Below, piece by piece: positions 15,241 through 56,722 of a DNA stretch of 58,470 nucleotides. A program made the translations under genes and the position numbers. This DNA comes from Octopus bimaculoides. Lineage: Eukaryota. Every line of letters starts with the position of its first letter. Within the stretch, counting starts at the first letter, position 1. Where the stretch lies: contig NC_068993.1 of NCBI RefSeq assembly GCF_001194135.2, forward strand, positions 9,585,731 to 9,644,200, written 5' to 3'. The notes beneath the pieces were generated by a model. That model was not told where the DNA came from, did no database searches, and was given only the letters and a program-made list of their open reading frames with translations.

Positions 15241-15290
15241 GAACAACAACAACAACAGAAGAAGAAAAAAGAAGATAAAAGAAACAATGG
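15241..15290 (+). CDS. ASNSD1: ASNSD1 exon 6, 3' part only (5' part in gap 14892-15238)
   Basis: EQQQQQKKKKEDKRNN(G)|GTAAGA; phase 2 end matches exon 7. The expected PIDLLNVAF segment is not visible elsewhere and would lie in the gap. Confidence 0.65.
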
Positions 15291-26711: not shown

Positions 26712-27298
26712 CTGTGAAAGACAAAAGTATAAATTATAATTTGAAGGAAAAAAAAAAAAAAAAATCTAAATTAAATATCAGAATAAATATTACTTTCAAA
26801 TTTTGACACNNNNNNNNNNNNNNNNNNNNNNNNNNNNNNNNNNNNNNNNNNNNNNNNNNNNNNNNNNNNNNNNNNNNNNNNNNNNNNNNNNNNNNNNNNN
26901 NNNNNNNNNNNNNNNNNNNNNNNNNNNNNNNNNNNNNNNNNNNNNNNNNNNNNNNNNNNNNNNNNNNNNNNNNNNNNNNNNNNNNNNNNNNNNNNNNNNN
27001 NNNNNNNNNNNNNNNNNNNNNNNNNNNNNNNNNNNNNNNNNNNNNNNNNNNNNNNNNNNNNNNNNNNNNNNNNNNNNNNNNNNNNNNNNNNNNNNNNNNN
27101 NNNNNNNNNNNNNNNNNNNNNNNNNNNNNNNNNNNNNNNNNNNNNNNNNNNNNNNNNNNNNNNNNNNNNNNNNNNNNNNNNNNNNNNNNNNNNNNNNNNN
27201 NNNNNNNNNNNNNNNNNNNNNNNNNNNNNNNNNNNNNNNNNNNNNNNNNNNNNNNNNNNNNNNNNNNNNNNNNNNNNNNAATACAGACACAAATATAT

Positions 27299-27329
<31 letters not shown>

Positions 27330-27873
27330 CACACACACACAACGGGCTTCTTTCAGTTTTCATCTACCAAATCCACTCACAAGGCTTTGGTTGGCCTGAG
27401 ACTATAATAGAAGACACTTGCCCAAAGTGCCACACAGTGGGACTGAACCCGGAACCATGTGGTTGGGAAGCAAGCTTCTTACCACACAGCCACACCTGTA
27501 ATAATAGTTTTAAAAAAAACAAAAAAACACCACTTCAAAGATTTCTGGAGTTGGTGAAGCCATGCCAAAACAATGGGTGGTAAGCAAAGTGTAGTTTGCA
27601 GGGCAATCCCTCTGTAGAGTCCAGAACCTGCTTGGCAATTGCAGGGGTCAGCAGATAGAAGACCATCCCGCTGGCTGAGGAGGTAGCAGAGGTTACTTCA
27701 AGGTGGCTGTGGATTAGAAGGGGCAAGCTTTGGAAGGGGTAGGACTAACTGGACACAAGGTGGGGTTTGATTAACCTTGGCTGGGTCACCTGTGCTGTAA
27801 CAATTCTGCTAGCTTGGTGCCTTAAAAGTATATATATATATATATATGGGATAGATATATAAAGCTAACATAC

Positions 27874-31864: not shown

Positions 31865-31988
31865 TGAGATTTGAGGAGACTTGTTGTCACCAAACCTCAA
31901 GATAAGACACCTGATAACTAGATTAGCATGCATGAGCATAATGATAGTAGTAGTAATAAATAAATAAAGAAATGAAAAGACAGTTTAC

Positions 31989-33078: not shown

Positions 33079-33358
33079 GCCAACAGCCAAAGCAAATGAT
33101 TCTCATCTGTCAATGACATAATTATAAGTGCTTTTTTGCACCACAAGTCTTTATGAGAGATCTTCTCAAGGCAAATAGCGTAGTATTTTCTGTTCTAACA
33201 CAACCGCCATCTTCGGTTGGAGATCAAGAGTACAAAAAGGACAGCTGTTCCAACATTCTACTGATTTTGTGGAACTTAAAATGAAGAGTAAAAATCAGAT
33301 TAGAAAAGAAACAGGAAAATTAAACAATCAAACAATCAAAGTAGAAAAAATGTTCAAC

Positions 33359-33491
33359 CTCAGCAACTCCAAGATCTGATATTTTCAAGGTTTCATCAGT
33401 CGTCAGCAATAAATTGCCTGGTTTGATATCTTTATGAGCAATGCGTTGGCTGTGGAGGTATTCAAGACCATCAATCAACTGATCAAAGTAT
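33359..33491 (-). CDS. STK11: STK11 exon 4
   Basis: [44 protein letters not shown]: LKB1-specific HKD and DLG motifs; 133 nt. Confidence 0.98.
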
Positions 33492-34075
33492 CTGCAAATA
33501 TAGGGCACAGAAATATTAAAACAACATGAAGACAAGGAAAACAAGAAACAAAAACACAAAACACAGAACATCTCAAGTGTATGCTTTTCTGTATGGAAAG
33601 AAAAGATGAGGAGAGAAGAAAGAAGGACAAATATATCTCAACCAGATGGCTAGCACAAATATGAGAAAGAGGGTTGGTGGTGGTAGTGGTGATGGCACAA
33701 GTATGACTAACAGAAAAAAGAAAATGAGATTGTGAGGAATCAAGAGCCTGATTTACTCTTGTGTGTTATATGAGGGTTAATCTAAGCACTGTGGAGGCAC
33801 AATGGCCCAGTGGTTAGGTGTGATGGTGCAGTTTTGATGGTTGTAGTTATACAGATGTGCTAACAGATGAGGACTATAGTGATGATGGTGTAACAGGCTC
33901 AGCCGAGTTAGCTTAGCCTAGCTGTTGATGATGATGGCAGTGATATTATAACAATCTTGTGTTATACCAAGCGACCTAGCCAAGAAATGATGATGATGAT
34001 GATGACAACAAAAGATGAATACATATACATGTAAAACATTTTTTGCAGTATATTGGTAATAATACGGTTACTCAC

Positions 34076-34165
34076 CCATGGGCCTGCCAAACTGGAAACT
34101 TTTTCTCTGGAGTATTTTCAAGCATCTCTTGCAATTCGCCAACACAGAACTCCATCACCATATAC
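34076..34165 (-). CDS. STK11: STK11 exon 3
   Basis: [29 protein letters not shown](G); 90 nt. Confidence 0.97.
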
Positions 34166-34900
34166 CTGTGATATCTTAGTTAAGGAACGAATATTCAAAA
34201 ATGATAGAAATTTCTCCCCTGCCTAACAGGGTCTGAAATTTGGGGGAGGGTGATAGTCGATTACATCGACCCCAGTACTCAACCGGTACTTAATTTATCG
34301 ATCAAGAAAGGATAAAAGGTGAAGTTGATCTTGGCGGAATTTGAACTCAGAACGTAGCAAAGGGGCAAAATACCACTAAGCATTTTGTCCAGTGTGCTAA
34401 CAATTCTGCCAGCTCACCACCTTCATAACAATAATAATAATAATAATATTCCAATGTTTTTGTAAACAATTTAATCAATAGCAGCTAGCTGCAGCAACAA
34501 CAACAATAACACCAACCACAATAAAGTCAAGCAGCTGAAAGCGATTAAAAGTAATAATATAATTTGTAGATGTCAAGAACCTTATGAATTTCATTAACAC
34601 TGACCTTTGCAAATGTGAAACATTTCAGACTTCTGAACAAAGCATACAAGAAATGTTACAAAATAGGCATAGCTAAGTGGCTAAGATATTCAGTTCTCAA
34701 CTACGTAGTTCTGGGTTCAATCTCACTGCATGATGCCGTTTGGGTGTTATTTTAACTGATTAAAAAACTTTTTGGCCCACTGAGTAAAGTAGCTCAGATT
34801 TAACTAATAGTTAACTAGCCTGCTTGTTTGCAGAAGAGTTGAGAAAGAAATGAAAAGAAAGAAAAACATACAAGATGTTGGCAAATGAATATAAGGATAC
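34166..34900 (-). other. STK11: U12-type (minor spliceosome) intron, GT-AG subtype, STK11 intron 2
   Basis: 5' splice site GTATCCTT (34900-34893); branch point TTCCTTAAC (34187-34179) ending 13 nt before the 3' splice site; no polypyrimidine tract. Confidence 0.93.
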
Positions 34901-34984
34901 ATTTTCTGTTTCTCTTCATTGTAAAGAACATCAATCAATTTAATGATGTTCTTATGGTGGAGCTGTTTAAGTAGACTGATCTCC
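34901..34984 (-). CDS. STK11: STK11 exon 2
   Basis: [27 protein letters not shown](M); 84 nt. Confidence 0.97.
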
Positions 34985-35286
34985 CTAGAAACACAGAAAG
35001 AGAAATAAAAAATAAATAAATAAATATATATGTGTAAATGTAAAAAAAACATATAAGTGCACAAACAAACAGACACAGGTCACCAACTCTTCATCAGTTA
35101 TTGACCAGAGGGTCCAACGCAATTTTGCACACACACACACACAAAATTACTAACAGTTCTTTTTTATTCAATTTTAATAACAACGAAAAAAAAAATGCAA
35201 AAACAATCAATTACAAGTTCTCATTCTTTTTTATTGAAAATATTTGTAACAAAAAAANNNNNNNNNNNNNNNNNNNNNNNNNNNNN

Positions 35287-35327
<41 letters not shown>

Positions 35328-36076
35328 GCAGGTGTGGCTGTGTGGTAATTAGTTTGCTTCCCAACCACATGGTTCTGGGTTCAGTCTTACTGCATGGCAG
35401 CTTAGGCAAGTGTCTTCTACTATAGCCTTGGGCCGACCAAAGCCTTGTGAATGGATTTGGTAGACAGAAACTGAAAGAAGCCCATCGTATATGTGTGTGT
35501 CTATATTTGTCCCCCCACCATTGCTTGACAACTGATGCTGGTGTGTTTATGTCCCCATAACTTAGCGGTTTGGCAAAAGTGACCAATAGGATAAGTACTA
35601 GGCTTACTAAGAATAAGTCCTGGGGTCAATTTGCTTGACTAAAGACAGTGCTCCAGCATGGCTGCAGTCAAATGACTGAAACAAGTAAAAGAATATATAT
35701 ATATAAAGTAGAAAAGTCCAAGGGTTGATTCATTTGACTAAAAATTCTTCAAAGCAGTGCCCCAGCATGGCCGCAGTCTAATGACTGAAACAAGTAAAAG
35801 ATTATCTACCTAATCTATCTATATATGTATATTATTTTTATGATCACCTGCAATTTGTATTACATACATCTATAAAAAACACACACACACACACATATAT
35901 ATGGTTACAACTGAATAGTTGAAACAAAAAAGCAAAAACAAATAAAAAAGACTACACACGCACATGTTTCAAAGTTATACTTATTTGGTGACTTGATTCG
36001 AGATTTTAAACCTGAAACAATTGTCTGTCATGGGTTGTATTCATAATAGCCACACACACACACACACACACCTATT

Positions 36077-36490
36077 TATTACCTCCGCCTTAGCGGAGGC
36101 AAAGGTATTGTTTCCAGTTGTTTGTTTGTCCATGGACAAGATATCTCAAGAACTGTTGGATGGATTCGAATGAAACTTTCAGGGATATTTGGCCTCATAA
36201 CTGCCACGAGCTGATTAGATTTGGGGATCGATCCAGTACTGGACAAGGCTTCTGGATTATTTTTCTTGTTCTTTTTTACTTAATTTTTNNNNNNNNNNNN
36301 NNNNNNNNNNNNNNNNNNNNNNNNTAATTTTTGAGAGTGGTCAGGTTCATTTTTAGTATTCTCGTTTGTGAGAGCAATCGAGTTTAAATCAGATATTCTC
36401 ATTTTAGAAATCATCTCTGGCTAATCGTTGAGAGGACGTTAGTGTTACCTTGGAGGAAGTTTCTGCTCTCCGAGTGCGCTTATTTTTGTT
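36077..36490 (+). mobile_element. DINE-1/HINE-like (Helentron-associated) non-autonomous element
   Basis: Starts TTATTA-CCTCCGC-CTTA-GCGGAGG (perfect hairpin), then a GTTTGTTTGTCC micro-repeat; ends GGAGG...CTCTCCGAGTGC. Internal N gap. Confidence 0.55.
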
Positions 36491-39052
36491 TTTGTTAGCT
36501 ATGTTAATCAGGTGTCAACATTTTTTTCTCATATTTTGTCACACATCTGTAGACTGCTTTGTTGCGGACACTATTCCTCTGCAGCTGTTGAAAATCACTT
36601 GTTACCCCCCTCCCCACCACCACCACCACCACCACACACACGTATGAGCACTGGCACTCCCTGCAGCTGAAGGGAAAAATTCTGACACAGAACGAGCGAC
36701 AGAAAGATGTGAGAGATATATAAGAAATTATATGTATGTGTACATATATATACATGTGAATGTGTATACATGCACTATATATCTGTGTGTAATTGCTCCC
36801 TCATTGGCTCACAGTTATAGGTAATAAATTAGTAATTGCTTTCTTAGCTTACAATGTCAAGTTTAAATATTAGAAAGTTATCTTAGATAAGTAGGCCATC
36901 AAGTTCTAATCAGTGAGCTAAGACCTTACTTTAGTAGTTTATTGACTCAGTTTTGCTTCTTTTCAATAATCCAAAATTGATTCAACCCTTTTATTATCAT
37001 ATTTCTGTTGAAATATGTAGTCTTTGTTTCAATCAATTGCGAGAATAGACTTTAGTAGAATTCTCATTATTTCTCATTATTAAACTGGGGTCAAGGCAGA
37101 ATCGTTAGCATGCCGGGTGAAATGCTTAGCGGTATTTCCTCTGCCACTAAGTTCTGACTTCAAATTCTGCCGAGGTTGACTTTTACCTTTCATCCTTTCG
37201 GGGTCGATTAAATAAGTACCAGTTATACACTGGGGTCAATATAATCAACTTAATCCGTTTGTCTGTCCTTGTCCCCTCTGTGTGTAGCCCCTTGTGGGCA
37301 GTAAAGAAATAAGAAACGTTAGCAGGCCAGGTGAAATGCTTAGTTGTATTTTGTTTGTCTTTATGTTCTGAGTTCAAATTCTGCCAAGGTCGACTTTGCC
37401 TTTCATCCTTTCGGGTCGATAAATTAAGTACCAATTGCATACTGGGGTCGATCTAATTGACTGGCCCCATTCCCCCAAAAATTTGGGCCTTGTGCCTAGA
37501 GTAGAAAAGAATTTCTCTTGGGATATACTACCTTTTATTTTAATGAGTTTTGAAAATAAAGAATTCATCATCATCATTTAGCATCTGCTTTCCATGCTGG
37601 CATGGGTCAGACGGTCTAACTGGAACTGGTAAGCTGGAGAGCTGCATCAGGTTCCAGCTAGATTTGGCATGGATTCTATGGCTGGATGCGCTTTCTAATG
37701 CCAAACACTCTAAGAGTGTAACGGTATTGTTTATGTGCCACAGGCATGGGTGCCATATACATGACACCAGTAACGGTCATGACTACCATTTCACTTGGCA
37801 TGATGAAGCTTCTCATGCACAGCATTGCCTTCGTGAGGCCCAACATTCGAAGATCATGCTACCGGCAAACGGCCACAATTATGATTTCATGAGTGCAATT
37901 CACATGACACTAGCAACGGTCACGACTACGATTTCACTTGGCTTGGAAAATAAAGAATTATGAAATTTTTATGGAAGGTTTTAACTTTTTACTTTAAAGC
38001 AGGGAATTTTTTTTATCAGAGAACCAAGGGTGTTCTCAGGTCAAAAAAAAAAACAAAAAAAAACTTTATTTCATCAATATTATTGGTTTTACATGTTTTA
38101 CACATGCTAGCATTGTCTGGAAATATCTAAAATATAACCATTTTCCATCCAAGAGCTCAACACCTGCACTATAACACTTTCCCCACCGCAGGCACTTATT
38201 TCTCCAAACTGAAACCTTATATTACTGAATGAAGTAATCTGACAGTGAAATATAATTTAACAACAGATAAGCACAACAATTTCTTTCTTTCTTTCTGTCT
38301 GTCCTCAGGTGATCTTGAAATAGAAAACAGCACCTTTGACCTCCCACCTAGGTGAGTTGGGAGTTCAGTCTATTTTACAGTTCAACTAGTGGCAAATCAA
38401 ACTTAATACCATCAGAAATTGCTATACTAGTTCCAGTTACAGAAACAACAACAGATATAATCTGTGACTATCTTTTTTTCCCCTTCTTTTTTCTCTTTAG
38501 ATTAATCTACTTTTGGAAGGAAAACAATATACAATGACTGCAATGATAAAATAACATCAATGATCATTAAGACAGCGCTCACAAAAGAAAAATTATTAAA
38601 AAAAAAAAGCAGAAAAAGCACAAAAGATTTCTATACACACACACAAATCAGAAAGACTGCTTCTACGAGTATATTTGACCCAAAAAACTTTCTATTGCTA
38701 TCACTCGACAGCAGGGGAAATTTTCCAAAGGGTTTCTTGTATATTTCTAATTTTTTTTTTTTTTTTTTTCTCTGACAATCAACTTATTTTTACAAGATGA
38801 AAACCCCGTAAGAATAGGGAGAAGAAAAAAATGTTTTATAAACGAACGATAATTCATTAGCAAGGACAATAAAATACCACACACAAAACCCCTCATCCAG
38901 TCATTTCACTAAGTTCAGCAAGTTAATAGGAGACTTCAAAAGAGAGTGCTTGAGTGCATTTTTAGTCAAAGTGAACATCAACAAGAGTAACCAATGTATA
39001 TACATAATACAGAAGAGATAAAGAGATAACTAGACTAATACAGCTCTCTCTC

Positions 39053-39089
<37 letters not shown>

Positions 39090-42000
39090 TTGTATAAATA
39101 AGACAAATAGATGGTACATGCTGAGGCAAGAAGTTTTGTGAGTTAATGGTAGCTCAAAAAAGACTTAAGTAGTCAGAACAATCCTGACAAAATTGGAATT
39201 TAAACATACATGATAAACAATGTCAGATGAAGACAGACTTAACTTCTGTTGTGTGTGTGTGTGTTGCAAAGTTATTTTAACCACAGACCACTCCAGTTTG
39301 GTAAAATGGATGATAGGATGACTCAGCAAACATATCCATTTTACCCATGCTGGTGCAGTTTTAAATACAGTTGCTGATGGTGGTGATGATGAGGATGATA
39401 AAGAACTTTGTCCTATTTAGATGTTGCAGCAAAAACAAAAGAGATTGTCATGCGATTCTTACAGTTTTAAAATAAACCATCAAATATGTTATTCAATGCA
39501 AACACACGCACAAAAATGAAAACAAAACTACATGTTCCAAATCAAGGTGAAAATAATAATAATAATAATAATTTGAAGAGAAGATATGTGAACTGATAAG
39601 ACTGCAGTATTTCTCCATCATTGCTTGCAGGCTTGCAGCAACAGAAGTCCTAACAGCATTATTAGCAAAGTGACCTTGTTCAGTTAACAAAAAAGAGTGC
39701 CAAGGAAGCAATAATGTTTAGTGTAACTAATAAGTAGACAAAGGGTGCAGTGTTTTATTTCATGCACACTGACAGTAAATCAACTCCACCAATGCATTAA
39801 GTCCATCTGACAACAAAGAATGCAGCCACCCACTTCGATGGACTGGACAGATAACAACGAAAAACATTTAAAATAGGCCAGTTTTGCAGATTAGTCGGTG
39901 ATGGTAGTGAAGCCAGCTGCTAAAGGTGCCAGAATCCAGAGTTCCAAATCGTGAGAAAAAAGGCCAGTTTTGTGGTGAAGTTAAACAGGTCAGAGTTCTA
40001 AATCATTAGAAAAAGTAATTTTAGACCAGGTTTAGAATGTCAAACAAACCTGGCCTTGCAATATCCATTTCAGCTCTGTTGTGTTCTGATAGTAACACTA
40101 TTGCTAGGCTGTATATCAGATCAAATCAGTGACCTTTCTCATGAAGAGGAGAGACATGCTTGCATGGGCAACTGTTAGTATCTAAAAATTGGAAAAAACA
40201 ATTAAAAAAAAAATCTTGCCCAGATTTGCACCTGTCTAGACAAGATTTATCTCCACATGGATATCCTTTTAGAAGTTTCAATCACTGGAGTGCTGCAATC
40301 TTTCGAGGATTTTGTCCGTTATATCAGCCCTTTGTCTAATACTTACTGACTGCAAAAGAAGCAATGTAAAAGAATGCCGCCAAATACGTCAAGCTATCTT
40401 GTTTGATCTGCTACCAACACTTTTACAATTTGTGAGTGCGTGTGTGTGTTTTGTGAAATATTCTAGAGATGTAAACAACCATAGGGAAAAAACAAAACAG
40501 GACAATGAACTCTGTGACAGGAATTAAATCCAGACACATTATTTGCTTAGCAGGAAAATGCTTTATCATTTACACCACATTGAGTTTTTGGATTTCCTCT
40601 AGCAGCTAATTCATTACACTCACACACGACACACCTTTATTGTAGGGATACATATCAAATACAACAGTAAAAGACCAACGGATGTTAAAACAGCATAAAA
40701 TGGTCTTTATGTAAAACAACAACAAACCCGAATTAAGAACAGAGGTTATTTTCTAACGATATAAAGAATATTTTCAATATTATCTCATGTTAAAAGAGGA
40801 TTATTAAATATAAGGGTAAAGACCCCCCTTTGGTCATGAACGACCCTGAGATTGCACCTAGAAAATTGTCCTCCAAGGCACAAGACCAGGCAAGGTTGTT
40901 TATGGAAGACCAGCAATCACCCATGCATACCAGTTTCCCTCTCCAAACCACTGATGTTATCTAAGGGAAAGGCAAAGGCTGATACAACTTGGCACCAATG
41001 ATGTCGCAACTCATTTCTACAGCTGAGTGAACTGGAGCAACGGGAAATAAAGTGTCTTGCTCAAGAACACAACATACAGCCCGGTCCAGGAATTGAACTC
41101 ACTCACCTCATTATTTGAGCCTTATGCTCTAACCACTAAGCCATGCACCTTCACTATTAAATAAGACAATCAATGATACTTATACATAGAATTAATGAAA
41201 CACCCCCCACCACACACACCTAATCTGCAAAGTGATCTGATGAAGACTTTTCAAGGTCCTAAGATTATGTGCCAAAAGGGCCAAGAATTTAAATTTTTTT
41301 TACTTGTTTCAATCATTGAACTGCAACCATGCTAGGGCATCACCTTGAAGGGTTTAGTTCAACAATACTGGTTGTCAAATGGTGGTGGAGACAAACACAA
41401 AGACACACATATAACACACAATGGGCTTCTTTCAGTTTCCACCTACCAATCCACTCACAAGGCTTTGGCTAACCAAAGGTGCCACACAATGGGACTGAAC
41501 CCAGAACCATGTGGTTGGGAAGCTTGTTACCATATAGCAACATGTGAAATTAAAACAAACCCTACCCCTCTGGTCTGTGAAGGTATGATCTGAGATTTGG
41601 CTGCTATTTCTAGCACATTGACAAACCATATAGATTTGGGATCTTGTTTATGGTCAAATGCACCCTAATTGAGCAGATGTATGACCAAAGAGATATCTTC
41701 TGGCCTTGGCCATCCTTTTTTTTTTTTTATGTCCAAGACTGCATTATCATTTTATTTTCTAATACAGTAAGGTGTGATCTGAAAGAAACCTGGTTGCTAT
41801 TTCTAGCAGATCAAGCAACCATATAGAGGACTCGCCAGTTGTCTCCTCAAGTAACCTGGAGATAGCAGAAGGGAAAATCAGAATACCATACAAACAAGTG
41901 ACAAAGAATAAACAGAGCAACCAAGGCCAGAAACAATTCTATAAACTAACTTATGCTGACATGAAAAACAAAAACAAAAATGCTGACAAATTACTTAAGT

Positions 42001-44780
42001 ATTAAAGGCGAGCATTGTACAGTTTCTAAAGAATTGCTTCTTTGTTGTTTTTTTGGGGGGGAGGGGGTCTTTCTGCTTTCTGTTTCTATGGTAACTCTTC
42101 AATGTCAGTGCTGATCATTCATCGATATTCAGAAACGGTTAGAAAAAAATGTATTCTTTGAATAAGATTAGCTTAATTTACAAATCAATTTATACNNNNN
42201 NNNNNNNNNNNNNNNNNNNNNNNNNNNNNNNNNNNNNNNNNNNNNNNNNNNNNNNNNNNNNNNNNNNNNNNNNNNNNNNNNNNNNNNNNNNNNNNNNNNN
42301 NNNNNNNNNNNNNNNNNNNNNNNNNNNNNNNNNNNNNNNNNNNNNNNNNNNNNNNNNNNNNNNNNNNNNNNNNNNNNNNNNNNNNNNNNNNNNNNNNNNN
42401 NNNNNNNNNNNNNNNNNNNNNNNNNNNNNNNNNNNNNNNNNNNNNNNNNNNNNNNNNNNNNNNNNNNNNNNNNNNNNNNNNNNNNNNNNNNNNNNNNNNN
42501 NNNNNNNNNNNNNNNNNNNNNNNNNNNNNNNNNNNNNNNNNNNNNNNNNNNNNNNNNNNNNNNNNNNNNNNNNNNNNNNNNNNNNNNNNNNNNNNNNNNN
42601 NNNNNNNNNNNNTATATATATATATATATATATGTTTGTGTGTGTGTGTTTGTCCCTGCCAACATTGCTTGACAATCAATGCTGGTGCCTTTAAGTCCCC
42701 GTAACTTTGCAGTTTAGCAAAAGAGACCGATAGAATAAGTACTAGGTTTACCAACAATAAGTCCTGGGGTCGAGTTGCTTGACTAAATGCGGTGCTCCAG
42801 CATGGCTGCAGTCAAATGACTGAAACAAGTAAAAGAATAAAAGAATATGTGCACGTGTGTGTGTGTGTATAGGTATACATGTGAGTGAGCGTATGTGTTT
42901 GTGCCTCTTTGTTCTGACATCATGTGATAGCCATAAATGAGCATCATTGTAATTCGTTTCCAAATTCTCTGTGAGACCATGTCTAGCCATGGAGAAATAT
43001 CAACTTGTTTGGAAACAGACAAAGGATGGCGACAGGAAAGGTATTTGGCCATAGAAAAATCTGTCCAAGCCATGCACCCACAGAACAATGGACAATGATG
43101 ATGATGACGAAGAATTTCTTTTAGATACAAAACCTTTCATCGGACTGTTTAACCAAAACTGTACTGTAATATAAAGTATTGATGTCTGTATGATCTGTTA
43201 ACCATTCCATTATAACTGGGTCACTTCAGAATAGTCAGGAATATTCTTTATTTTAATAATATTCTTTACTTCTTTACACAATATGTTATTCATTTTTTTC
43301 TTTCTTTTCTTTCTTAAATACTGCTACAGCTGGCTAATTTCCAGGTAGATTTTGGAAAAACAAGATAACAGTATTTGGCAGAATGACAATGAAAGTTAAT
43401 AAAATAAACTAAAATAAAATAATAAAAAAAAAACATCCCCCCCCCCCAAATGAAATAACAAAATAATAACTTAATGTTTTTTTTGTTAAGTAAAGACCGT
43501 CATAAGAATAATTAACCATAGGTATTTCCCTCTCGTTTCTTTAATAATAGGCCAGTTCGCCCCTCCGTTCTGTTTAATTGCCTCGCTTTTGTTACTTTGA
43601 AGCAGTGTTATGGTGATTGCCAATTGCATTATCTTGCCTGCAACCTAACAAGATAATAAAACTTAAGTAGAAACACTTTACAGAGGAAACAACAGTAAAA
43701 ATAAACTAACCCAAAGCCTGGCTATTTTTAAAACAAGTTTTAAAACATTTTTACCACTTGTTAAAGATCAACATAAGAATAATTCTAAAAGCTAATTTCA
43801 TCAACTCGTTTGATTTTAAGCTGCCCGAATTAAAATCAATTTAATGTATTTCGGCTATAAAGAAAAATGCATTGATTTTTTTTTTTTTTTGTGATTGCTT
43901 GTTACTTAAAAGAACCTTCCACCTGTTGAAATAAATAAGTTAATCTAGATGCAGGCATAGCTGCAGGGTAAGAAATTTGCTTCCCAACTACATCGCTCCA
44001 GGTTCAGTCTGACTGTGTGACACTTTAGGCAAGTGTCTTCTACAACAGCCTTGGGCTGACCAAAGATCTTATTTGGTAGATGGAAACAGAACGAAGCATT
44101 ACACCATCTCTCTCTTACACTTCTGCTGTTTCCTACTCTCTCTCTCCCTCTCCTTCTCTTGTTTTTCCTCGGACTAGGTAACCAAGTATCACCTTTACAC
44201 CAGCACCCTTGTTTCTGGCCTCTTACTTCTGCTTCTCTCTCACTGGGTAACCATGTACCTCCTGTATATCAGGACACCAATTTCTCTGTCACACACTAAC
44301 CTTTCATCATCTGATACTAGATCACCTCCTCTAAGTAGAATATTTTGGCCGTGCATGGCTGGTTTAAATACTAAAGGGTTAGAGCAGCAAGTTTATGGCA
44401 TAGAACCTGTGACTGGGTTGGTTGGTATCAAGAGGGTTATTTCAGCAGTCAGTCCATACATATCATCATCCTTATCATCATGGTTTTAATGTTTGCTTTT
44501 CCATGCTGGCATGAGTTGGACAGAGTTAAGACAGACTTTTTTCGGATCCTTTCCCGTTGCTAACCCTCACCAGTTTCCAAGCAAAGTAATATTTCCCCAT
44601 GGCCAGACATGTTCTCGCAGAATATTGGGAATGAATAAATGACACAGCTTATATGACAGTGACACACACACACACACACACATATATGTAAAACATAAGG
44701 GACTATCCCAAAACGATTACCGGTTTGTTCTCAGTTAGGTATTCAAAATATGTTATTTCATAGTAATCCTTATTAATATT

Positions 44781-44847
<67 letters not shown>

Positions 44848-45654
44848 CACACGGGCTTCTTTCAGTTTCCATCCAACAGATCCCTTCACAAGGCTCTGGT
44901 CAGCCTAGAGTTATATCAGAAGAGACTTGCCAAAGGTGTTACACAGTGGGACTGAACCTAGAACTGTGAGTTTGGAAGTAAAATTTTTAACCACATGACC
45001 TAACCTTCTACCATTTACAGCTGCTACTGATAATGATTTATTCTTACAATAGGTAAAAAGCTGCACTATTGTATTAGAGAGAAAGAGAAAGGAGGGGAGA
45101 GAAAGAGAGAGCAAAGGATAGAGAGAGTTGGGGTGGGGGGTAGCTGACTGAACCAAATTCAGCACATGACTATTGACTTGTTGGCTCTGACAGTGTGTGA
45201 ACTCACAAGAGTTAGAAGATGGAACTAAACACACCACAGTATGCTGACAACAATGTCTTTCCTTGCTAGAGACAAGATCAACTTTGACAGGGAGAAGAAA
45301 CAATCAATTATGGTGACCCAGTATGGGAGTTATTTATATGTTTTACGTCACAAAATTGTGAACAATGGTGTCATTTGGGCTGATCAATGGTTCATTGCCT
45401 TTGTGACAATGGAACGTCACCTCCTACCCCTTCCACACATTATTCTTTTACTTGTTTCTGTCATTTGACTGTGGCCATGCTGGAGCTCTGACTTGAAAGC
45501 GTTTTAGTCAAACAAATTGACCCTAGGACTTATTTTCTTTTTAGGCCAAGTACATATTCTATCAGTTGCTTTTGCTGAACTGCTAAGTTATGGGGACGTA
45601 AACACACCAACACTGGTTGTCAAGCAGTGATGAGGGAACACACACATATATGTG

Positions 45655-45725
<71 letters not shown>

Positions 45726-45924
45726 GATGGGCTTCTTTCAGTTTCTGAATCTGCTCACAAGGCTTTGGTTGGTCTGAGGCTACAGTAGGAGACACTTGCC
45801 CAAGATGCTACGCAGTGGGACTGAACCCGAAACCATGTGGTTGGGAAGCAAGCTTCTTACCACACAGCCACTTGTACCAAACCGGAAACCATGTGACTGT
45901 GAAGCAAACTTGTTAATCATACTG

Positions 45925-45963
<39 letters not shown>

Positions 45964-46138
45964 ACCATCATGGGCCAGATGGAATTTTCTGAGGTAGATT
46001 TTCTATAGCCTAAAACCTTTCCTGTCATAATTCTTGATTAGCTTCAAAATTAATGGGAATGTAGAGGATGTTTAATCCATTGAGATTATGGCTGCAAAAG
46101 AGTTAATGTCCTATTATAGCAGGGAGCAGCCTTATTAA

Positions 46139-46359
46139 CCCTTTTGATACCAATCTGCCTAAGACCGCCCCAAGTTCTATGACAAACTTACTACTGTTTT
46201 AAAGTAGTCTAAATTATTATCTTCCATCCAAATTTTATGCTAAATTATTCCAGACACCAGCTTAATGATTATAAAGTTATTTAACTAAATAATTCATTGT
46301 TTTAAAAATTAATTGAAACAAAGGCAGCATATGTCAACAGAAATACGGTAACAAAAGGG
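46139..46359. mobile_element. piggyBac-type MITE
   Basis: TIRs CCCTTTTGATACC / GGTAACAAAAGGG flanked by TTAA on both sides. Partial copies at about 6045-6190, 13300-13460, 29700-29815 and 36940-37070. Confidence 0.85.
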
Positions 46360-47291
46360 TTAAATATATTGGAAATGTGTCCACTGATATTGTCAGTGAG
46401 CTTTTTAATAATTGCAGAGTGGTTACTGTTTTTTCATTCAGCTCATATAGACAAAGTGTTTTTATGTGTTTAGGTCTAATGTTATGTGTAGGAAATTTGC
46501 TATGTTTAGGCTGGTCTATGGTAATTTTAGACCAAGTTGTCAATGTACTAATTAACATCCGATAAGGATTTGATGCCAGAAGCACAACCTAAGACTGACA
46601 AAAGCTATGAAATACGACACACCACTGAGTAGATCGGTTTCATGCAAATGACAAGGAGACACACTCCCACCTGCATAATCAGATTTAATTTCAGCACAAG
46701 GTCAATTATTTTAAGGGGAGGGGCAAGTCAACTACTTTGACCATCAGTACTCCACTAGCACTTACTGTAAAAAAAACCATGTAATTTACGCATTTCTTTC
46801 ACAAAAACTAAAATAAACTTTGCGGGGTGCATAAATTACATGAGATCGTTTCCAGAATTTTTTAGAGATTTTTTTTTGTTGAAAAATGACATAAATGTAA
46901 ACATTTGTACTGGAAGTTGACTCATTTGTTTAACTAAACCTTTCAATGTGTTGCCCCAGCATGGCCACAGTCCAATGACTGACTAACAAGTTGGGAGCCA
47001 GTTGGGTGGCACTGGCAACACTCATGCTTGAATAATGCTTTTTACGTGCCACTGGCACACACACACACATATATATATGTGCTGGTGGCACGTAAAAAGC
47101 ACCATTTGCCATGATAGATCCTTAGCCACTAAACCTTTTTCTATTTTCTCTCCCTGCTTATTTCTGTGTTCCTCTCTGTCGAAGAGCATAGGCTCGAAAT
47201 GTAAAAGACCTTCTCACTTCCCGAGCGTTAAACTAATACATCTGTTTGTTGTTTACACACCTGTCTTCATCTTTTGTTTTTTTGTAAATTC

Positions 47292-47368
<77 letters not shown>

Positions 47369-49445
47369 TATATATACCTAAAACCAAAGATCACTCACTT
47401 TTGCACAAATCATATCTGGAGGACATAACATGGAAATACTTTGCAATTTCACAACCTCATCTTGCAGGCTTTTCCTCTTTGAGTACCTCCATTATTATGC
47501 CCTAACATTATTCCATATAATCAATTATTTAATTACGTATCTACATATTCAGTCAGTTAATTACTTGTCTATTTAATTAACTGTACATTAATTTTTTTTA
47601 CAATATTTTACCTTATCTCTCTTAAATACTTCTACATATTCATTTTGCCAACAAAAATTACAGCACAAACCATATTTAGTATACTTTCAATTATCTCCCT
47701 TCGAAAGTAGTAGGGAATTATTTCCCCTGCTTTACTGCCCCCACCCTCTTTTTTGTTGTCTCATGTCACATCTAACATTACAAATGCAAGAGCTTGGTGC
47801 CCAATAAGATGTTATGCTTCTATGGCATCTCTATGTATTTACAGTTACACGTCCACACTCTAAACTGCCATACAGCAGGTTAGTTTCCTGAGGGCACATT
47901 ACATGTGGGAACTGAAGCACACCAACTCATGGCACCAGTTTTTATATAACATAGGTGCAGGTATGGGCGTGTGGTAAAGGGTTCAGTTCCACTGCACAGC
48001 ACCTTGTGCAAGCGTCTTCTTCTATAGCCCAAGTCAGACAAAAACGTTTTAAGTGGATTTGGTAGGCAGAAACTGAAAGAAGCCCTTTGTGTGTGTATGT
48101 GTGTGTGCGTGTTTGTCTAACTGTCTAGCCATTGCATGATTGTTGCAAATGACATGTCATTCGTTTCCAATATTCTGCCAGAACATGTTTGGGCCATTGG
48201 GGGAAATATAACATTGCTTGGAAACTGGTAATGGTTGGCAACAAGAATGGCGCTGGGCAGCAGAAAATCAGTCTTGATAAACTCCATCTGACCAATGCCA
48301 TGCAAGCATGGATAAACACACTTTCAGATGGTGGTGGTGATGATGATGATGAACAACTGCACACATATACAAAGAGTTAGAAACAATTTCTACCTATCAA
48401 ATTCCAGTGACGTAGTCAACCCAAGGATAAGACAGAAGACAATTGATCAAGGTGCCATATAGTGGGATTGAGCCTAGTACCATGTACAGCAAAACCACAC
48501 AGCCATGCCTGTAGTTATCTGACTGACCTTGAAAGATGGACAAATTACGGTTAGAAATTTGTATTAAAAAAAAAAAAACAACAGGCATCATGTAGTGCAT
48601 TCTCTTCCACAGAGTTGCCCAACACAACAATCTTTTAATAATGATCCTTTCTATTATAGGCACAAGGTCCAAAATAGGGGTTAATCAATTAGAACAACCC
48701 CATTCGTTACTAACCTGGCCGTAGCCAGCCGAAAAACTTTTTGGTTCATAAGCCCAACCTGGCCATAACCGGCCGAGAGTACCCATTGTTATTTAAATGT
48801 AAATTTGAACCCAAATCTCATTAGTACATTCGTTAAAACACCTGATTTCACTTTGAAAACAGTTGAGTTATTGTATCCGACATTGTTTGGCGTGATATTT
48901 GACCTTGGAAGGATGAAAGACAAAAGTTGGCCGTGGCGAGGCTTGAACTCAGAACACAGTGTCTGATGAAAGACCTCTAGGCTTTTTGTCCAACATTCAA
49001 ATGATTCTGTCAATCTGCTGTCCTTAAATTTTCCTAACATAAGTACAAGGCCTGAAAGTTTTAAATAATGGGGATAAGTCGATACAATGACCTTAGTACT
49101 TGACCGATACTTTATTTTAACAACTGATTGTTAAATCTCCTTCCATACCCATTGTTTTAAAAGAGGAATGAACACATTAGATAATGTAGTCCAAGATATC
49201 CTAGCACAGACAGGATGCTTTTGACCATTGGCCTGTTCAGTCAAGGATGACTTGGGACTAAACCCCAGCATGGCCACACTCCAGTATTTGATTAATACTT
49301 ATTTTATTGACCCTCCAAGGAGAAGATAAGCAAGACTGAATGTGATGGGATTTGAAGTAAGGGGATATGACCAGACACCAAAGTAGTGCATTGTCTAGAG
49401 CTCTACTGACCATTGTCTTCAATTATAATAATCCTCCCTTACTAT

Positions 49446-50323
49446 AGGGCTTTCCTATAAGTAGGTTATCTCCCTTGGCTAGGCGGCGCTCCATGTAGAT
49501 AATTAAACTTCCGGAGGCTACCCACGCCATTGTTATTGTTTTACGTCTTATCATGGATATAAAGCAGCTTGATGATTCAGCTATCGAAGTACTTATTGTG
49601 CCTGAGTTAAAGAAATATTTAAGATTATATGGACAGTATGTTACTGGAAGAAAGGCGGACNNNNNNNNNNNNNNNNNNNNNNNNNNNNNNNNNNNNNNNN
49701 NNNNNNNNNNNNNNNNNNNNNNNNNNNNNNNNNNNNNNNNNNNNNNNNNNNNNNNNNNNNNNNNNNNNNNNNNNNNNNNNNNNNNNNNNNNNNNNNNNNN
49801 NNNNNNNNNNNNNNNNNNNNNNNNNNNNNNNNNNNNNNNNNNNNNNNNNNNNNNNNNNNNNNNNNNNNNNNNNNNNNNNNNNNNNNNNNNNNNNNNNNNN
49901 NNNNNNNNNNNNNNNNNNNNNNNNNNNNNNNNNNNNNNNNNNNNNNNNNNNNNNNNNNNNNNNNNNNNNNNNNNNNNNNNNNNNNNNNNNNNNNNNNNNN
50001 NNNNNNNNNNNNNNNNNNNNNNNNNNNNNNNNNNNNNNNNNNNNNNNNNNNNNNNNNNNNNNNNNNNNNNNNNNNNNNNNNNNNNNNNNNNNNNNNNNNN
50101 NNNNNNNNNNNNNNNNNNNNNNNNNNNNNNNNNNNNNNNNNNNNNNNNNNNNNNNNCAAACCAAAAAAAGAATCCTGACCACAGAGTGTGGGTAATTATG
50201 TCAAATGTCACTGGCAATGTGCATTCAGCTGATTGCAACTGTTAAAGCAAGTCACTGAGCATGCGTACATGTCATACAGGAGAGTTCCAATCAGGGGTGG
50301 ATAACACCTTATAGGAAAGCCCT
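49446..50323 (+). mobile_element. TIR DNA element carrying SAP- and SWIM-like coding remnants (ISL2EU/PHIS-like, non-autonomous)
   Basis: Perfect inverted ends AGGGCTTTCCTATAAG / CTTATAGGAAAGCCCT. ORF from 49553 reads LIVPELKKYLRLYGQYVTGRKAD (SAP-like); after the gap HRVWVIMSNVTGNVHSADCNC* (first half of a SWIM). Family assignment is inference. Confidence 0.65.
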
Positions 50324-52281
50324 ATAGGCACAAGACTTAGCGCTTTTTTTTTTTTTTGCTTAGGATAGGGAGCTAGTCAATGTAATAGTTTATCTGCTAA
50401 TCTATCAGGGTCAATAAATTAAGTACCAGTTACGCACTGGGGTCGATATAATCGACTTAATCCCTTTGTCTGTCCTTGTTTGTCTTCTCTATGTTTAGCC
50501 CCTTGTGGGCAATAAAGAAATAACAGCCAGATCTCCCTCAAACCACATCATACCACCTTAAAAAAAAAAAAATGTTGGATTATGTGGTTCAGTGTCTCCA
50601 ACATGTATGAAAAAGAAATACAGGGTGGCCACATCTGAAATGCCCTTGATCAAAGGTCTGCTCTATCGTGGTTCACCTGTGGCTAAACAATAACAAAGTT
50701 TTCCTTCTTGGAATTGTTCACTGAAAGAATATTATCAATCTGTCTTGCCACAAGCTGCAACGTCCTTGTTATCAAGTCACACTAGCTATAATTACCAATT
50801 CTATTAACTTCACCCTGCAGTTTTGATTCCAGCAAGAACCAAGGCAGAAACATGAGATACCAAGCTAGGTTAACAAAGTATCTAGGCCAGTTGTTTCTCC
50901 CACTATTATTGTGCCAAATTCCCATCATGCTTTTTGGGCAGGATAAATTTGTGATGTAAACTGTGCAATGCAAAAGTAGATTTTGAAAAGGTTAATACTA
51001 TTTATAGCAATGGGGAGGGGAAAAAAGGGGAAGAAAAAAAACAAAAAAACAATGCAATTGAATTTTGATTTTCTGTTTGACTCAAACACAAATATAGAGT
51101 GTACACAACACAGGCATGTGTGTGTATATACCCTCACACACAGGCATGGCTGTGCAGTTTAGAAGTTTGCCTCCCAATGGCATGGTTTCAGGTTCACTCC
51201 CTCAGAGTGGCACCTTGAGCAAGTATCTTCTATTATAGCACCTGACTGACATAAAACCTTGTGAGCAGATTTGGTAGATGGAAACTGAAAGAAGCCTACC
51301 ATGTGTGTGCGTGCATGCTCCAGTGCCTACTTTACTTGATGTTATGCAATAGCTGTAAATGAGTGTCACCGTCATACGAGCGGTGTCCTTCATTTCCAAA
51401 AGTCTGTAAAAACATGCCAGGTCATAAGGAAATATTGCCTTGCTTGGAAACAGGTGAGGGTTGACCACCGGAATGGCACTGGGCTATAGAGAATCTGCCA
51501 AAGTAAATTCCATCTCAGTCGTGCAAGCATGGAAAAGTGGATGTTAAAACAAAATGAGTAGCAGGATCCATGAATATTTCACAGAATTAATGGTAAACCT
51601 ATTGGGTCATTTCTGAAAACTTTATCCAAAAAATCCGAAAGTGTAGCCTGTCTTGTGTCTGTATGGAAAGATAGTCACTCATCTGCTACTCATTGAAAAG
51701 TGAAAGAAATTGGAATACGATGATTACTTAATGCACTTTATAAAAACGCTTTATATATTTTATGCACAATTTTATAGACTTAATTCACAGAACTCATAAA
51801 AATCCTGTACATATGATACAACCTTTAGTTAAATTGCATATATCTACCACGTAAATAAGCGTGAATATTTCACGGAATTGCACTTATGCACATGCATTAA
51901 GTGACAGGTGATATAAAAAACTAACTTCAATAACAAAAAGACATTTTTCACTATCCAATCACCACTGTCATCATCATCTCTCTCTCTGCTTTTCTTTAAC
52001 CTCACCATATGACACTGAGTGTGCAGTAAAGAGACTTCCCTCTATTTGCACAAGAGCCCCAGACCAGCAATTCATTTTGTTCCGAGGTGATCTGAATACA
52101 TGGTATCGATAAGCCACAATGAAGGCAAAATATCGATATCTACTATTCTTGATCACTTAGGGGCGAATTGTCTCGCCTGATCTTGGATACTTGGTGCTCC
52201 TTAACACTCAGTGTTGTGTAGGGACCCTTCCCTGGATGTTATCCAGCAGCGAGTGGGTGTTTAAACAAAACGCATACACTA

Positions 52282-52427
52282 TGTATGCTGTCAACTTAAT
52301 GTGAAAGTCCCCTGAAGGGAATAATACTACTGTTGGTTAGACCAAGGAAGTGGTGCAGCTTCCTAGGTCTAACCAACAGTAGTATTATTCCCTTCAGGGG
52401 ACTGTCACTTTAAGTTGACAGCATACA
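52282..52427. repeat. 146-nt near-perfect fold-back in STK11 intron 1
   Basis: 69-bp stem with 3 mismatches including a perfect 38-bp run (52306-52343 / 52366-52403); 8-nt loop. Confidence 0.95.
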
Positions 52428-52673
52428 ACTACTTCATCGTATCACTACTGCATAAATCTCTCTGAGAGATTTGGAAATGTATTATTTCTAAGGTTGTTAA
52501 TGTTAGGAAATAAACTAAGTTTAACTCAAGACGACATCTTTCTTTTGGCTGGCAAGGGGCTATTATAGAAGTAACTTGTCCAACGTGCCATGCAGCAAGA
52601 TTGAACCAGATACCACATGGTTGGAATGCAAGCTTCTTAGCCACCCAACCATACCTGCACAATAAATAAATAA

Positions 52674-52710
<37 letters not shown>

Positions 52711-54478
52711 CACACACACACACAAGACATATCATAAAAGTTATGACCTGGTTACAAGCAATGGTATATGAATCACAAACTATAGCAGAACAGGGATAAT
52801 TATTTCTACAGTATATAAATCATAAGCAAATAATTTCCTTACTGTGTCAGTGACCTTTCTACTTAAACAAACAGTAAATTCACTAATTAGTAAGACACCG
52901 AAGAAGAACAGCTCGCATACCACAAGTTTTTATATCACACACACATGTACACAAGACGACAACTAAAAGTACACACAAGAACTACCTTACTAAACGAAGC
53001 AGCTTAGAATAAAGGGAGGAAGGGAGTGGGGAATGATAATAATAATAATAATAATAATAATAATCAATAAATAAATAAATAACAACAGAAAGGAAAAAGA
53101 AAGAAGAAACATTGAACCAGAGTAGTGCTATGTTAAGAAGCCAGGCATAGGTAAGTACTGCTAGCTGAAGTATGTTGATAACAATGAAACAATGGTTCCA
53201 AGGTAATATTGAAAAGAAAAGGAAAACATTATGAGGTTGGGGTGAAATTAGTTAGTAATGAAGGACAAATAAGTTAGATGCTGCTGCTTATGATGTTCTG
53301 TAGGAACATGCAAAGACACTTCAGAAATAGCATTTTCTTTCTTTAGATCAAAGCTTAATAGTCCTTAGTGTTTTTCCCTATTGGTGCCAAACCAAGTCAA
53401 ATGGGTTTAACTAAAAGATTACATATCTCTATTGTAAATAAATTCTTCTCCATGGCTCAGAGAGAAATAAGGGGAGCGTAAAAACCAGAAGAGGCAGAAG
53501 TCTATCAAAAGTTTACTTAAGATTGGGAGAGGTAATTCATTGTGTTCTTGAGCAAAACACTTTATTTCATGTTGTTACGGTCCATTAAGCTGGCGAAAAT
53601 GCGTAATCCTATGATGGACTGGCATCCTATCCAGGGGGAACATATACACCACAGAAACCAGAAAACTAGCCTTATGAGTCTATATGTTTCAGAAAGATGC
53701 TTTATCCTTTTAAATGTCAGCTGGTTATCTAACTGATCAGGGCTTTTTTAAGGAAGGAGACACTAAGTTTCAGGATCTTTGTCAATACCACCTAGGGACC
53801 TCCAATACTAAGAGCTTCATAATACCTGCAGCCAGGGTCTTACAAAAATCTTAATCCAGCTCTGGTCCTTATCAATACTTTTTAGAACATTATTATTAGA
53901 TAAGGACACCATCAGGTTTTCTTATCGTTGTTTAGCTCTGCATCAAATTATTTGTTTCTGGTGCGTACCATCACCTCTTTCTTCAGATCTTGCTATTTAT
54001 TGTTGAACAGTGAAATAATTATGAGATAATTCTCTCACAGTCAGGTGAAAAGGAGAAATGAACAACACAAATATTGTTGAATTTTATAGCTCTGCATTGT
54101 GATGCTGGTGGATCTCCTTCATTCGACGACGAGGAGGATTCAGTCATTCAATGAAGTGAATAACCTGCACCCGAATTAACGTGTAAGTGGTTGAGTATTC
54201 CAAAGCCATATACACCCTTGACGTAATTCTCAGGTGAATCAGCGTGACAGTGAATACAAGGCTTAACCTATAGAATTATAGGAACCACCAGTCCAACAGG
54301 CTTCTGTACATTTTCCATCCATCCTGCTTTACTTACAAGGTATGGGTGTATCCAAAGGCCTTAGATAGCAAGATTTACCCTAAAATGCCAAGCAGCAAGA
54401 ACGAACCCAGGACCTCGTTATTGTAAAGTGAACTCCTTCACCGCCTAACCATGCTGTGCTTACAACTCCACAATAATG

Positions 54479-54534
<56 letters not shown>

Positions 54535-56135
54535 GACGGGCTTCTTTCACGTTTTCATCTACCAAATCCACTAATAAATCTTTAATCAGCCCGCGGCTAT
54601 AGCAGAAGAAATTTGCCCAAAGTGTCATGCAGTGGGACTGAACCCCAAACCCTGTGGTCGGGTTCTTACCACACAGCCATAATACCTGCTCCTTTCACAT
54701 TTAAGAAAAAAAAAATTTTTTTTGAATGCCTAACGTTCAGAAGAGAAACCCAACGACCGTTTCTTTTTTTTAAATGCTTAATATATAAAAAAAAAAAAGT
54801 TACAAGGGGATTGTTTAAAGCAAAAACACAAAAAAAAAACGCGCTTAAATGATAAAGTATCGATTAGAAAAACCCCCAATTCATTCTGATTTAAAACCGA
54901 GTTTAATCTTGCTAGTCTAACCTTACTAATAAACCCTCGATCACTTTAACACTTTACCAACTGCAAAGCTGTAGCTTCTCTGCTTCACTCGCTCTGCTGC
55001 CATTTAAGAAACAGATCGAACACCAGAGATCGATTCGATATTCAAATCTTTTACTGTAAATTCGTTGTCTCTGACAATTCTCAACAGTTTGTTTTGTGTG
55101 TGTGTGAGAGAGAGAGAGAAGAAAGACAAGAATATAATTTCCTGGGGGTTAAAAAAAGCTCTTATTTTACAAGATAAAGCAACGACACACACATCTCAGG
55201 ATACACAAATTCAAAATAAAACTGTCAACAAGTAACAATACAACAAACACCAAACAGACCCCCAGAATTGTGTAAGGCCCAAAAGGGGCGAGGAAAAACA
55301 AGAGGTTTCATGTTTACTGTTTCCTTGGGCCTAGCCATCTACACAATACACAATGTTATAGATAACAATACCAGTAAGAGGGTAGGGGTATATAAATAAG
55401 CCAGTAGAGATGCAAAAGTGAAAAATGAGAAAAATGTGTAAAAACATTTTTTTAAATAAAGGGATTTTCATCTGGCTTTGAACCTTAGGAATATACATAT
55501 TTTGTTTAATTTGTAAAAAATTTTGTCCAGCATATCAAAATAGTTCAAAAAGATGAATTACAGGGGACAATAAATAGAAACCTTAAACTTGGGGCCTTTT
55601 CTCTCTCTTTTTTTTTTTTTGGTGGTGAGTCAAATATTTAGCATCAAACATACATAAATTGGTGTGGGGGTGGAGGTATATACTTTTTTTTTCTTTTAAA
55701 ATGTATTTGTTACATGCATGCTTATCAGGTCAACTTCTTTTGGCATTTCCACGGTGGGGAGTGATTTACCCTATATGTAAAAAAGGCTTTAGAGCGTGAG
55801 TAGAAATGTGAAATGGTAAGGTGGAACTGCGAAGGCGATACCTCTTCAAGACGGCATTGATAAATGAAAGAATTATAACCAGAAATGGAAATTGAAGAAA
55901 AAGTGAACCCGGCCGCATAGGGCTTACACTATAACGGGGCTGCGAAACTGCATTAGCCCCATTATAACTCTATGGCGTCTGTCATATAAACACTGAGTAA
56001 TTCCCTAAATCCAAACATGACTTATTTACAAGGGCAGAACGAATATATATATATATATATATGTATAAATACCTACATACTTTACAGAAGTACATGCATA
56101 ATACACATAAATACAAATAGAATTGTAATACCGAC

Positions 56136-56722
56136 CTTTTAACATTCTTAATTCCACTGGGTATCTTCCGAAGTTTTTTCTTCTTGAGGATTTTAACAGC
56201 CCTCCGGCAAAGGTTTTCAGTGTCCAATACCTCTTTCACCTTACCATAAGAGCCCTCTCCCAGAACATCACCCATCAAATACTTGCCGACGTGCTTCGCC
56301 CGACGGCGACGGTACACAATTTGGTCGGAATCAACACGTCGGAAGATGAGTGCTGATGACAGCGGTTCATCGTCGTTAATGAAGTCCAAGTGACCAGGCT
56401 GATAGTAGCTGGACTCTTGGTCAGCTTCTTCGAATTCTCGACGCATCGAGGCCATTTTCTGATCGTACTCGAATTCGTCTAACCCATCTTCATTGCAACG
56501 ACGATAATCCTCTTCATAATTGTCGTGTTCTTCGTCTCCGTGGTCTTCTGCATAGTCCTGTGACAAGCCACAGTGTGTGGTTCCAAGTTCACTTTCTTCT
56601 TCGTCGTCGTCGCCCCCACAGTGAGCTTCTCTGTCCAGAGGAGACACGTCTCCCTGACCGAGTCCACCCTCGTCTCTGTCGTCGGTCATAGGTTGGGTTG
56701 AGAGTTCATTTACTTGATCCAT
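56136..56722 (-). CDS. STK11: Serine/threonine kinase LKB1, exon 1
   Basis: Acidic N-terminus, then [69 protein letters not shown](R); donor AG|GTCGGT, phase 2. Nine exons sum to 1503 nt = 500 aa. Confidence 0.97.

Follow-up and report, generated by a model that had tools for sequence, protein, structure and literature searches.

The minus-strand interval 34166-34900 is very probably (we put it at about 0.93) intron 2 of the octopus STK11/LKB1 gene in the form of a U12-type intron of the GT-AG subtype. Both its splice signals and its orthology with minor introns of other animals point to a dependence on the minor spliceosome. STK11/LKB1 is a kinase with a tumour-suppressor role, and disease mutations occur in its minor intron in human. 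All coordinates below refer to the window, that is, the whole 58,470-nt stretch of DNA that was analysed.

Gene structure and junctions of intron 2

The LKB1 kinase lies entirely within the window. A tblastn search with the human LKB1 protein as a probe revealed a chain of minus-strand exons running from ~56.4 kb to ~27.9 kb. The top database match of the window protein was STK11 of Octopus sinensis (99% protein identity), and the STK11 coding DNA of the window and O. sinensis was 95-100% identical, so that the window belongs to a close relative of O. sinensis within Octopus and not to that species itself. The gene holding the interval is STK11/LKB1 of Octopus. Its exons, introns and splice signals are listed in Table 1.

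Table 1. Features of the STK11 locus, in window coordinates (a slash marks a splice junction).
Feature	Position	Strand	Description
STK11 coding exon 1	56136..56722	-	start ATG at 56722; octopod-specific acidic N-terminal extension
STK11 intron 1	34985..56135	-	21.2 kb, U2-type, N gaps inside
STK11 exon 2	34901..34984	-	84 nt; ends in AT of the split Met codon
STK11 intron 2	34166..34900	-	735 nt, predicted U12-type GT-AG, phase 2, in the Met codon of EKQKM/Y
Predicted U12-type 5' splice site GTATCCTT	34893..34900	-	followed by ATAT; predicted pairing site of U11 and later of U6atac
SINE-like dispersed repeat and (AAT)n microsatellite	34230..34450		inside intron 2; passenger DNA, no splicing signal
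Predicted U12-type branch point sequence TTCCTTAAC	34179..34187	-	branch A presumably 34180, at -15 in the intron
Spacer and 3' splice site TAAGATATCACAG	34166..34178	-	last 13 nt; polypyrimidine tract absent
STK11 exon 3	34076..34165	-	90 nt; opens with G of the split Met codon
STK11 intron 3	33492..34075	-	U2-type GT-AG (GTGAGT...pyrimidine tract...CAG); internal comparison, ends defined by the same transcript contigs
STK11 exons 4-8	33491-33359, 32125-31989, 29962-29835, 29479-29422, 28055-27874	-	U2-type introns 4-7 between them
Two more STK11 coding exons	near 26.7 kb and 21.1 kb	-	beyond exon 8

In a splice-consistent model, the exons following exon 3 measured 133, 137, 128 and 58 nt. 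The resulting series of 84/90/133/137/128/58 nt is identical to that of the human STK11 exons. Spliced alignments showed eight intron positions, in phases 2,2,2,0,2,1,2,1, to be common to all ten intron-bearing loci; the window shares the position and phase of seven of these eight, which are the ones that can be checked there. The junction between exons 1 and 2 was apparent from raw reads whose loose ends, upstream of the exon 2 border, continued with the terminal sequence of exon 1.

The acidic extension encoded by exon 1 amounts to ~80-90 aa (...DDDEEESE...) in octopod STK11 proteins (507-509 aa), and the ~390-470-aa orthologues of the other sampled animals are without it. Elsewhere in the window, a long ORF at 13990-14703 (plus strand) ends in ...AILFSGGLDAAVIAALADR, a nucleotide-binding motif of asparagine-synthetase-domain proteins; at the O. 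sinensis and Argonauta loci, a GATase_7/Asn_synthase gene is convergent with STK11 and overlaps its 3' end. Runs of N total ~3 kb (e.g. 35258-35286, 14900-15250, 25400-26050, 26800-27330, 42200-42650 and 49650-50160), a pattern typical of a short-read scaffold assembly. Intron 2 and its flanking exons are gap-free.

Read on the reverse complement, exon 2, intron 2 and exon 3 are laid out as ...GAAGAGAAACAGAAAAT/GTATCCTTATATTC ... TCGTTCCTTAACTAAGATATCACAG/GTATATGGTGATGGAG..., and the intron divides the Met codon as AT/G. Four independent RNA runs from different studies (X1, X2, X3 and X7) each yielded one long contig in which 735 nt were skipped and 34161 was joined to 34897. The junction in these contigs is ambiguous by 4 nt because GTAT begins both intron 2 and exon 3. 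Of the five cuts that this allows, 34166-34900 alone has canonical ends, which read GT...AG on the minus strand. The octopus junction was also considered as AT-AC, and this reading was rejected: a 2-nt shift gives AT...GT, and all the shifted cuts are non-canonical. Raw reads from three 2026 RNA-seq runs were mapped to narrow unique stretches, and every one of those found on exon 3 (20 reads) and exon 2 (16 reads) stopped at the exon edges. Intron 2 is a real intron, removed at exactly the 34166-34900 junctions. A first-pass annotation of this DNA had placed it after EKQKM, between exons of 84 and 90 nt, and had proposed a cDNA check; the exons are as it described, and the predicted junctions are matched by the contigs of the four runs and by the raw reads.

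When raw reads were mapped to the whole region 33200-35100, repeats inside the intron swamped the signal and the true intron 2 junction did not emerge. It was resolved by the transcript contigs and the narrow unique stretches instead. The repeat at 34230-34450 is covered very deeply by multi-copy reads and contigs, which differ from one another at many letters. More generally, introns 1 and 2 contain SINE-like repeats (e.g. ...GGCAGAATTGTTAGCACACTGGACAAAATGC...) and (AAT)n/(ATG)n microsatellites, at 34230-34450, 34680-34740 and 35320-35440, on which RNA-seq reads and contigs of other genomic origin pile up thousands-fold, hiding true junctions.

Splice signals of intron 2

The hallmarks of minor introns are a 5' site (A/G)UAUCCUUU, a branch site UCCUUAAC and the absence of a polypyrimidine tract, with a distance of 10-20 nt between branch and 3' site and an optimum of 11-13 nt (PMC8199999). 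The 5' site of intron 2 matches /RTATCCTT(T) exactly from +1, and its branch sequence is a perfect TTCCTTAAC, which is TCCTTAAC-like. The branch A at -15 is inside the 10-20 nt range and slightly outside the optimum; the gap between motif and junction is 13 nt. The U12 5' site, perfect branch point and GT-AG ends described in the first-pass annotation were all recovered at the coordinates it had given, on the minus strand.

Splice site strength was assessed on exact spliced alignments of ten annotated STK11 genes of other animals and of the window. A U2 5'-site matrix was built from the 77 other STK11 introns of these alignments. On this matrix intron 2 scored -0.9 bits, as compared with a mean of 7.2 (sd 2.7, minimum 0.7) for the 77 U2-type introns. 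On the U12 5'-site matrix, which was derived from orthologues of intron 2 outside the octopods and so restates the consensus and is not an independent model, it scored +12.0 bits, against a maximum of 0.4 among the U2-type introns. This is the comparison of U12 and U2 scores that the first-pass annotation had called for, and it favours U12. The pyrimidine fraction between -18 and -4 was 0.47 for intron 2, which ties the lowest value of the 77 U2 introns (mean 0.73). A C is found at +5 in 1/71 and at +6 in 4/71 U2 introns; intron 2 has both. Finally, among the introns of the window, a perfect TTCCTTAAC at the proper distance is present in intron 2 alone.

Counted over the whole window, RTATCCTT was observed 3 times (4.9 expected) and TTCCTTAAC twice (0.76 expected), and neither U12 motif was enriched window-wide above chance or shuffled sequence. 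Enrichment alone therefore cannot support a U12 call, and the evidence lies in the position of the motifs: the joint chance of finding both rightly placed in a given intron is roughly 2e-9.

Two more ATATCCTT octamers are present in the window, at 2429-2436 (minus strand) and at 40261-40268 (plus strand), a count equal to chance expectation; the one at 40261 falls inside STK11 intron 1, in antisense orientation. Introns 4 and 5 have 5' sites that are unusually low on the U2 matrix (gag/GTTGAA at 33353-33358, 1.6 bits, and att/GTAAAC at 31983-31988, 0.7 bits, both on the minus strand). They are identical in O. sinensis, and are accompanied by strong pyrimidine tracts and no U12 signals. An Rfam scan of the window returned zero hits, for snRNA genes as for other families.

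The conservation of the intron among octopods was also analysed. Intron 2 is 735 nt long in the window, 3970 nt in O. sinensis and 984 nt in Argonauta hians. Its interior cannot be aligned between Octopus and Argonauta; GTATCCTT, invariant in O. sinensis and Argonauta, and the block formed by the branch site, spacer and AG are kept (Table 2). The spacer of the window is identical in O. sinensis and near-identical in Argonauta. Kept ends amid a drifting interior are the pattern that would be expected of functional splice signals. The homologous parts of O. sinensis intron 2 (locus 38878-42847) and window 34166-34900 are 87-95% identical, and the surplus of ~3.2 kb in O. sinensis is partly repeat-derived. 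The O. sinensis branch site differs from that of the window by one C-to-T change.

From what is established for minor splicing, the U11/U12 di-snRNP would bind GUAUCCUU and UUCCUUAAC cooperatively, with the branch adenosine in UUAAC bulged out. The AG located ~14 nt past the branch site would be picked by proximity, with no pyrimidine tract involved. The U4atac/U6atac.U5 tri-snRNP would then join and complete catalysis, U6atac replacing U11 at the 5' site. Molluscs are relatively rich in minor introns, and O. sinensis is included, with human and Lingula, in the pairwise minor-intron conservation matrix of a survey that applied intronIC to over 3000 genomes (PMC10639083). Therefore, the minor-splicing machinery is expected in this octopus.

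The orthologous intron in other animals

The intron splitting the same Met codon in phase 2 was extracted from the genomic loci of 11 other animals, one of which proved intronless; the survey covered deuterostomes and lophotrochozoans. Phase 2 in the Met of EKQKM/Y was found in 11/11 intron-bearing species examined, and the exon bases flanking the intron (...AT/ and /GTA) are alike in all lineages. Nine other species, which represent 5 phyla, carry the same U12 motifs in their copy of the intron. All four AT-AC orthologues combine a ATATCCTT 5' end with a U12 branch site (Table 2).

Table 2. Ends of the orthologous STK11 intron in the sampled animals (a slash marks a splice junction).
Intron type	Species	Intron ends
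AT-AC U12	Callorhinchus milii (elephant shark)	ATATCCTTTA...TTTCCTTGACtcagtctaAC
AT-AC U12	Saccoglossus kowalevskii (acorn worm, hemichordate)	ATATCCTTTT...TTTTCTTAACcttattttttttAC
AT-AC U12	Lingula anatina (brachiopod)	ATATCCTTTA...TTGCCTTAACtttcttcAC
AT-AC U12	Paralvinella palmiformis (annelid)	ATATCCTTGT...TTGCCTTGACttgtttAC
GT-AG U12	Liolophura (chiton)	GTATCCTTTT...GTCCTTAACcaacaaacAG
GT-AG U12	Sinanodonta (bivalve)	GTATCCTTGG...TTCCTTAACacatctaAG
GT-AG U12 (predicted)	Argonauta, O. sinensis, window	5' GTATCCTT in all three; 3' blocks TTTCTTAAC-CGAGATATCCCAG (Argonauta), TTCTTTAAC + spacer (O. sinensis), TTCCTTAAC-TAAGATATCACAG (window)
U2-type	Haliotis (gastropod)	tt/GTATGTAAAT...ttgccttggttacAG
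U2-type	Lottia (gastropod)	GTAAGTGTTC...ttttaaaattttcAG
No intron	Owenia fusiformis	gene is one continuous ORF

Within the sampled species, AT-AC ends occur in two deuterostome and two non-molluscan lophotrochozoan phyla, and GT-AG U12 ends in molluscs only. The divergence of chitons from conchiferans is the basal molluscan split. Since AT-AC is found outside the molluscs and GT-AG U12 on both sides of this split, parsimony points to an AT-AC intron in the bilaterian ancestor and to a single switch to GT-AG in the molluscan stem. An A to G change at +1 and a C to G change at the last intron base would have switched the subtype in stem molluscs, leaving the junction unmoved. Later, in gastropods, changes at +5/+6 (GTATCC to GTATGT or GTAAGT) and the gain of a pyrimidine tract would have moved the intron to the major spliceosome. 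The STK11 intron thus quite probably documents a full decay path. An AT-AC U12 intron would have been kept in vertebrates, hemichordates, brachiopods and annelids; chitons, bivalves and cephalopods would have held its GT-AG U12 form, acquired once, for more than half a billion years; and the intron would have become U2-type in gastropods. If GT-AG U12 is indeed such a long-lived stable state, the idea that a switch of subtype is just a brief step on the way to conversion would have to be qualified.

The first-pass annotation had read the intron as a deeply retained STK11 minor intron with GT-AG in place of AT-AC ends, and had suggested a survey of bilaterians to polarise the switch. The shared codon and phase and the survey agree with that reading, the dependence on the minor spliceosome being predicted from sequence, and the direction would be from ancestral AT-AC to GT-AG in stem molluscs.

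The STK11 gene of Owenia fusiformis (locus 301-1551) is a 416-codon uninterrupted ORF from which all eight conserved introns are gone, which suggests a retrogene or wholesale intron loss. At the Haliotis rufescens locus (2413-2580), the acceptor and the first ~40 nt of exon 3 (ggttacag/gtacctagt.atggaat.ctgtgt...) are present in three tandem copies of ~67 nt, and the last copy alone runs in frame into the remaining exon 3. The Haliotis sequence TTGCCTTGG, located 6 nt from the 3' site, is possibly a decayed form of the branch site that reads TTGCCTTGAC/TTGCCTTAAC in Paralvinella and Lingula.

Two other explanations of the U12-like signals were weighed. Intron 2 might represent a GT-AG intron of a "hybrid" or "minor-like" kind that is on its way to conversion, and be spliced wholly or partly by the major spliceosome. 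Such a state is conceivable, as intron classes form a continuum (PMC11347168), the GT-AG subtype supplies the most frequent U2 converts among U12 introns (PMC2831892) and two gastropod orthologues are already U2-type. However, the 5' site of intron 2 falls below all 77 U2 introns on the U2 score, its C residues at +5 and +6 are rare in U2 introns, and the pyrimidine tract is missing. Moreover, exact U12 signals are kept in the chiton, the bivalve and the octopods, implying continuous selection. We therefore regard splicing by the major spliceosome as improbable. That an ordinary weak intron resembles U12 motifs by chance is more improbable still: each motif is indeed no commoner over the window than in shuffled sequence, but the joint probability of ~2e-9 and the recurrence of the same motifs in nine other species of five phyla effectively refute it.

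A distinct question is whether a U12-type intron 2 acts as a rate-limiting, regulated bottleneck for octopus LKB1 expression, as the first-pass annotation had proposed together with a measurement of intron retention by RNA-seq. According to PMC8199999, citing Patel 2002, minor introns can splice about two-fold slower and have been proposed as bottlenecks; the single minor intron of STK11 is, in addition, retained across bilaterians. However, unspliced reads at the ends of intron 2 amounted to 0/36 of the exon-overlapping reads, in shallow steady-state cDNA of low power, and the U2-type intron 3 behaved alike at its 5' end. Contig depth over unique intron sequence was 0-4, against 109 for the mRNA contig (run X1), so that intronic depth does not exceed a few percent of mRNA depth. 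In these low-power steady-state data, neither reads nor contig depth revealed any unspliced excess of intron 2 over the neighbouring U2 introns. Minor status also appears dispensable in some lineages: because the gastropod intron is U2-type and the Owenia intron is gone, dependence of LKB1 on the minor spliceosome is not indispensable. The bottleneck is thus doubtful; the retention measurement lends it no support, and data this shallow do not disprove it.

Comparison with known systems

Minor-intron conservation, subtype switches and U12-to-U2 conversion are already established; the first two have been on record since 1998 and are covered by genome-wide catalogues. The octopus STK11 intron 2 is a clean example of this known evolutionary pattern and not a new type of feature, and it opens no new question because conservation and subtype switching have been known for so long. 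In the literature and survey supplements searched, we did not find the STK11 intron of molluscs named individually, and Octopus is absent from the list of IAOD. What is new here is the probable history per lineage, from AT-AC to GT-AG U12 in stem molluscs and to U2 in gastropods. It would make a tidy and datable natural series in which a minor intron changes subtype and then converts to major, and would place the dependence of STK11 on the minor spliceosome at least as far back as the bilaterian ancestor. Its practical value lies mainly in annotation and teaching. Cephalopod gene models should mark intron 2 as U12-type, and the molluscan STK11 series could be a test set for intron classifiers.

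The closest known system is human STK11 intron 2, which PMC12366057, citing Hastings 2005, describes as a U12-type AT-AC intron between c.374 and c.375, at Met125. The position and type that the first-pass annotation attributed to the human intron agree with this source, and the codon and phase match those of the octopus. In both species the intron separates the 84- and 90-nt exons of the same gene after the second base of a Met codon, and in both it carries the U12 5' core TATCCTT together with, near the 3' end, a branch site of the UCCUUAAC type. The two introns differ in their ends (AT-AC in human, GT-AG in octopus), in the position of the branch A (-10 in human, c.375-10A, PMC12366057; -15 in octopus), and in length and repeat content.

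In the intronIC catalogues (PMC10639083), which include an Octopus genome, octopus STK11 intron 2 is the kind of case that is counted. The conversion of GT-AG U12 introns to U2-type through changes at +5/+6 was proposed by Burge et al. 1998 and quantified by Lin et al. 2010 (PMC2831892). According to the latter, AT-AC introns seem to go through a GT-AG U12 stage before U2 conversion, and both subtypes are found within 36 U12DB clusters. The STK11 intron shares this GT-AG U12 stage and displays all three states. Mechanistically nothing sets it apart from the pathway described by these authors; it would add one more gene example, dated to the molluscan stem and the gastropods.
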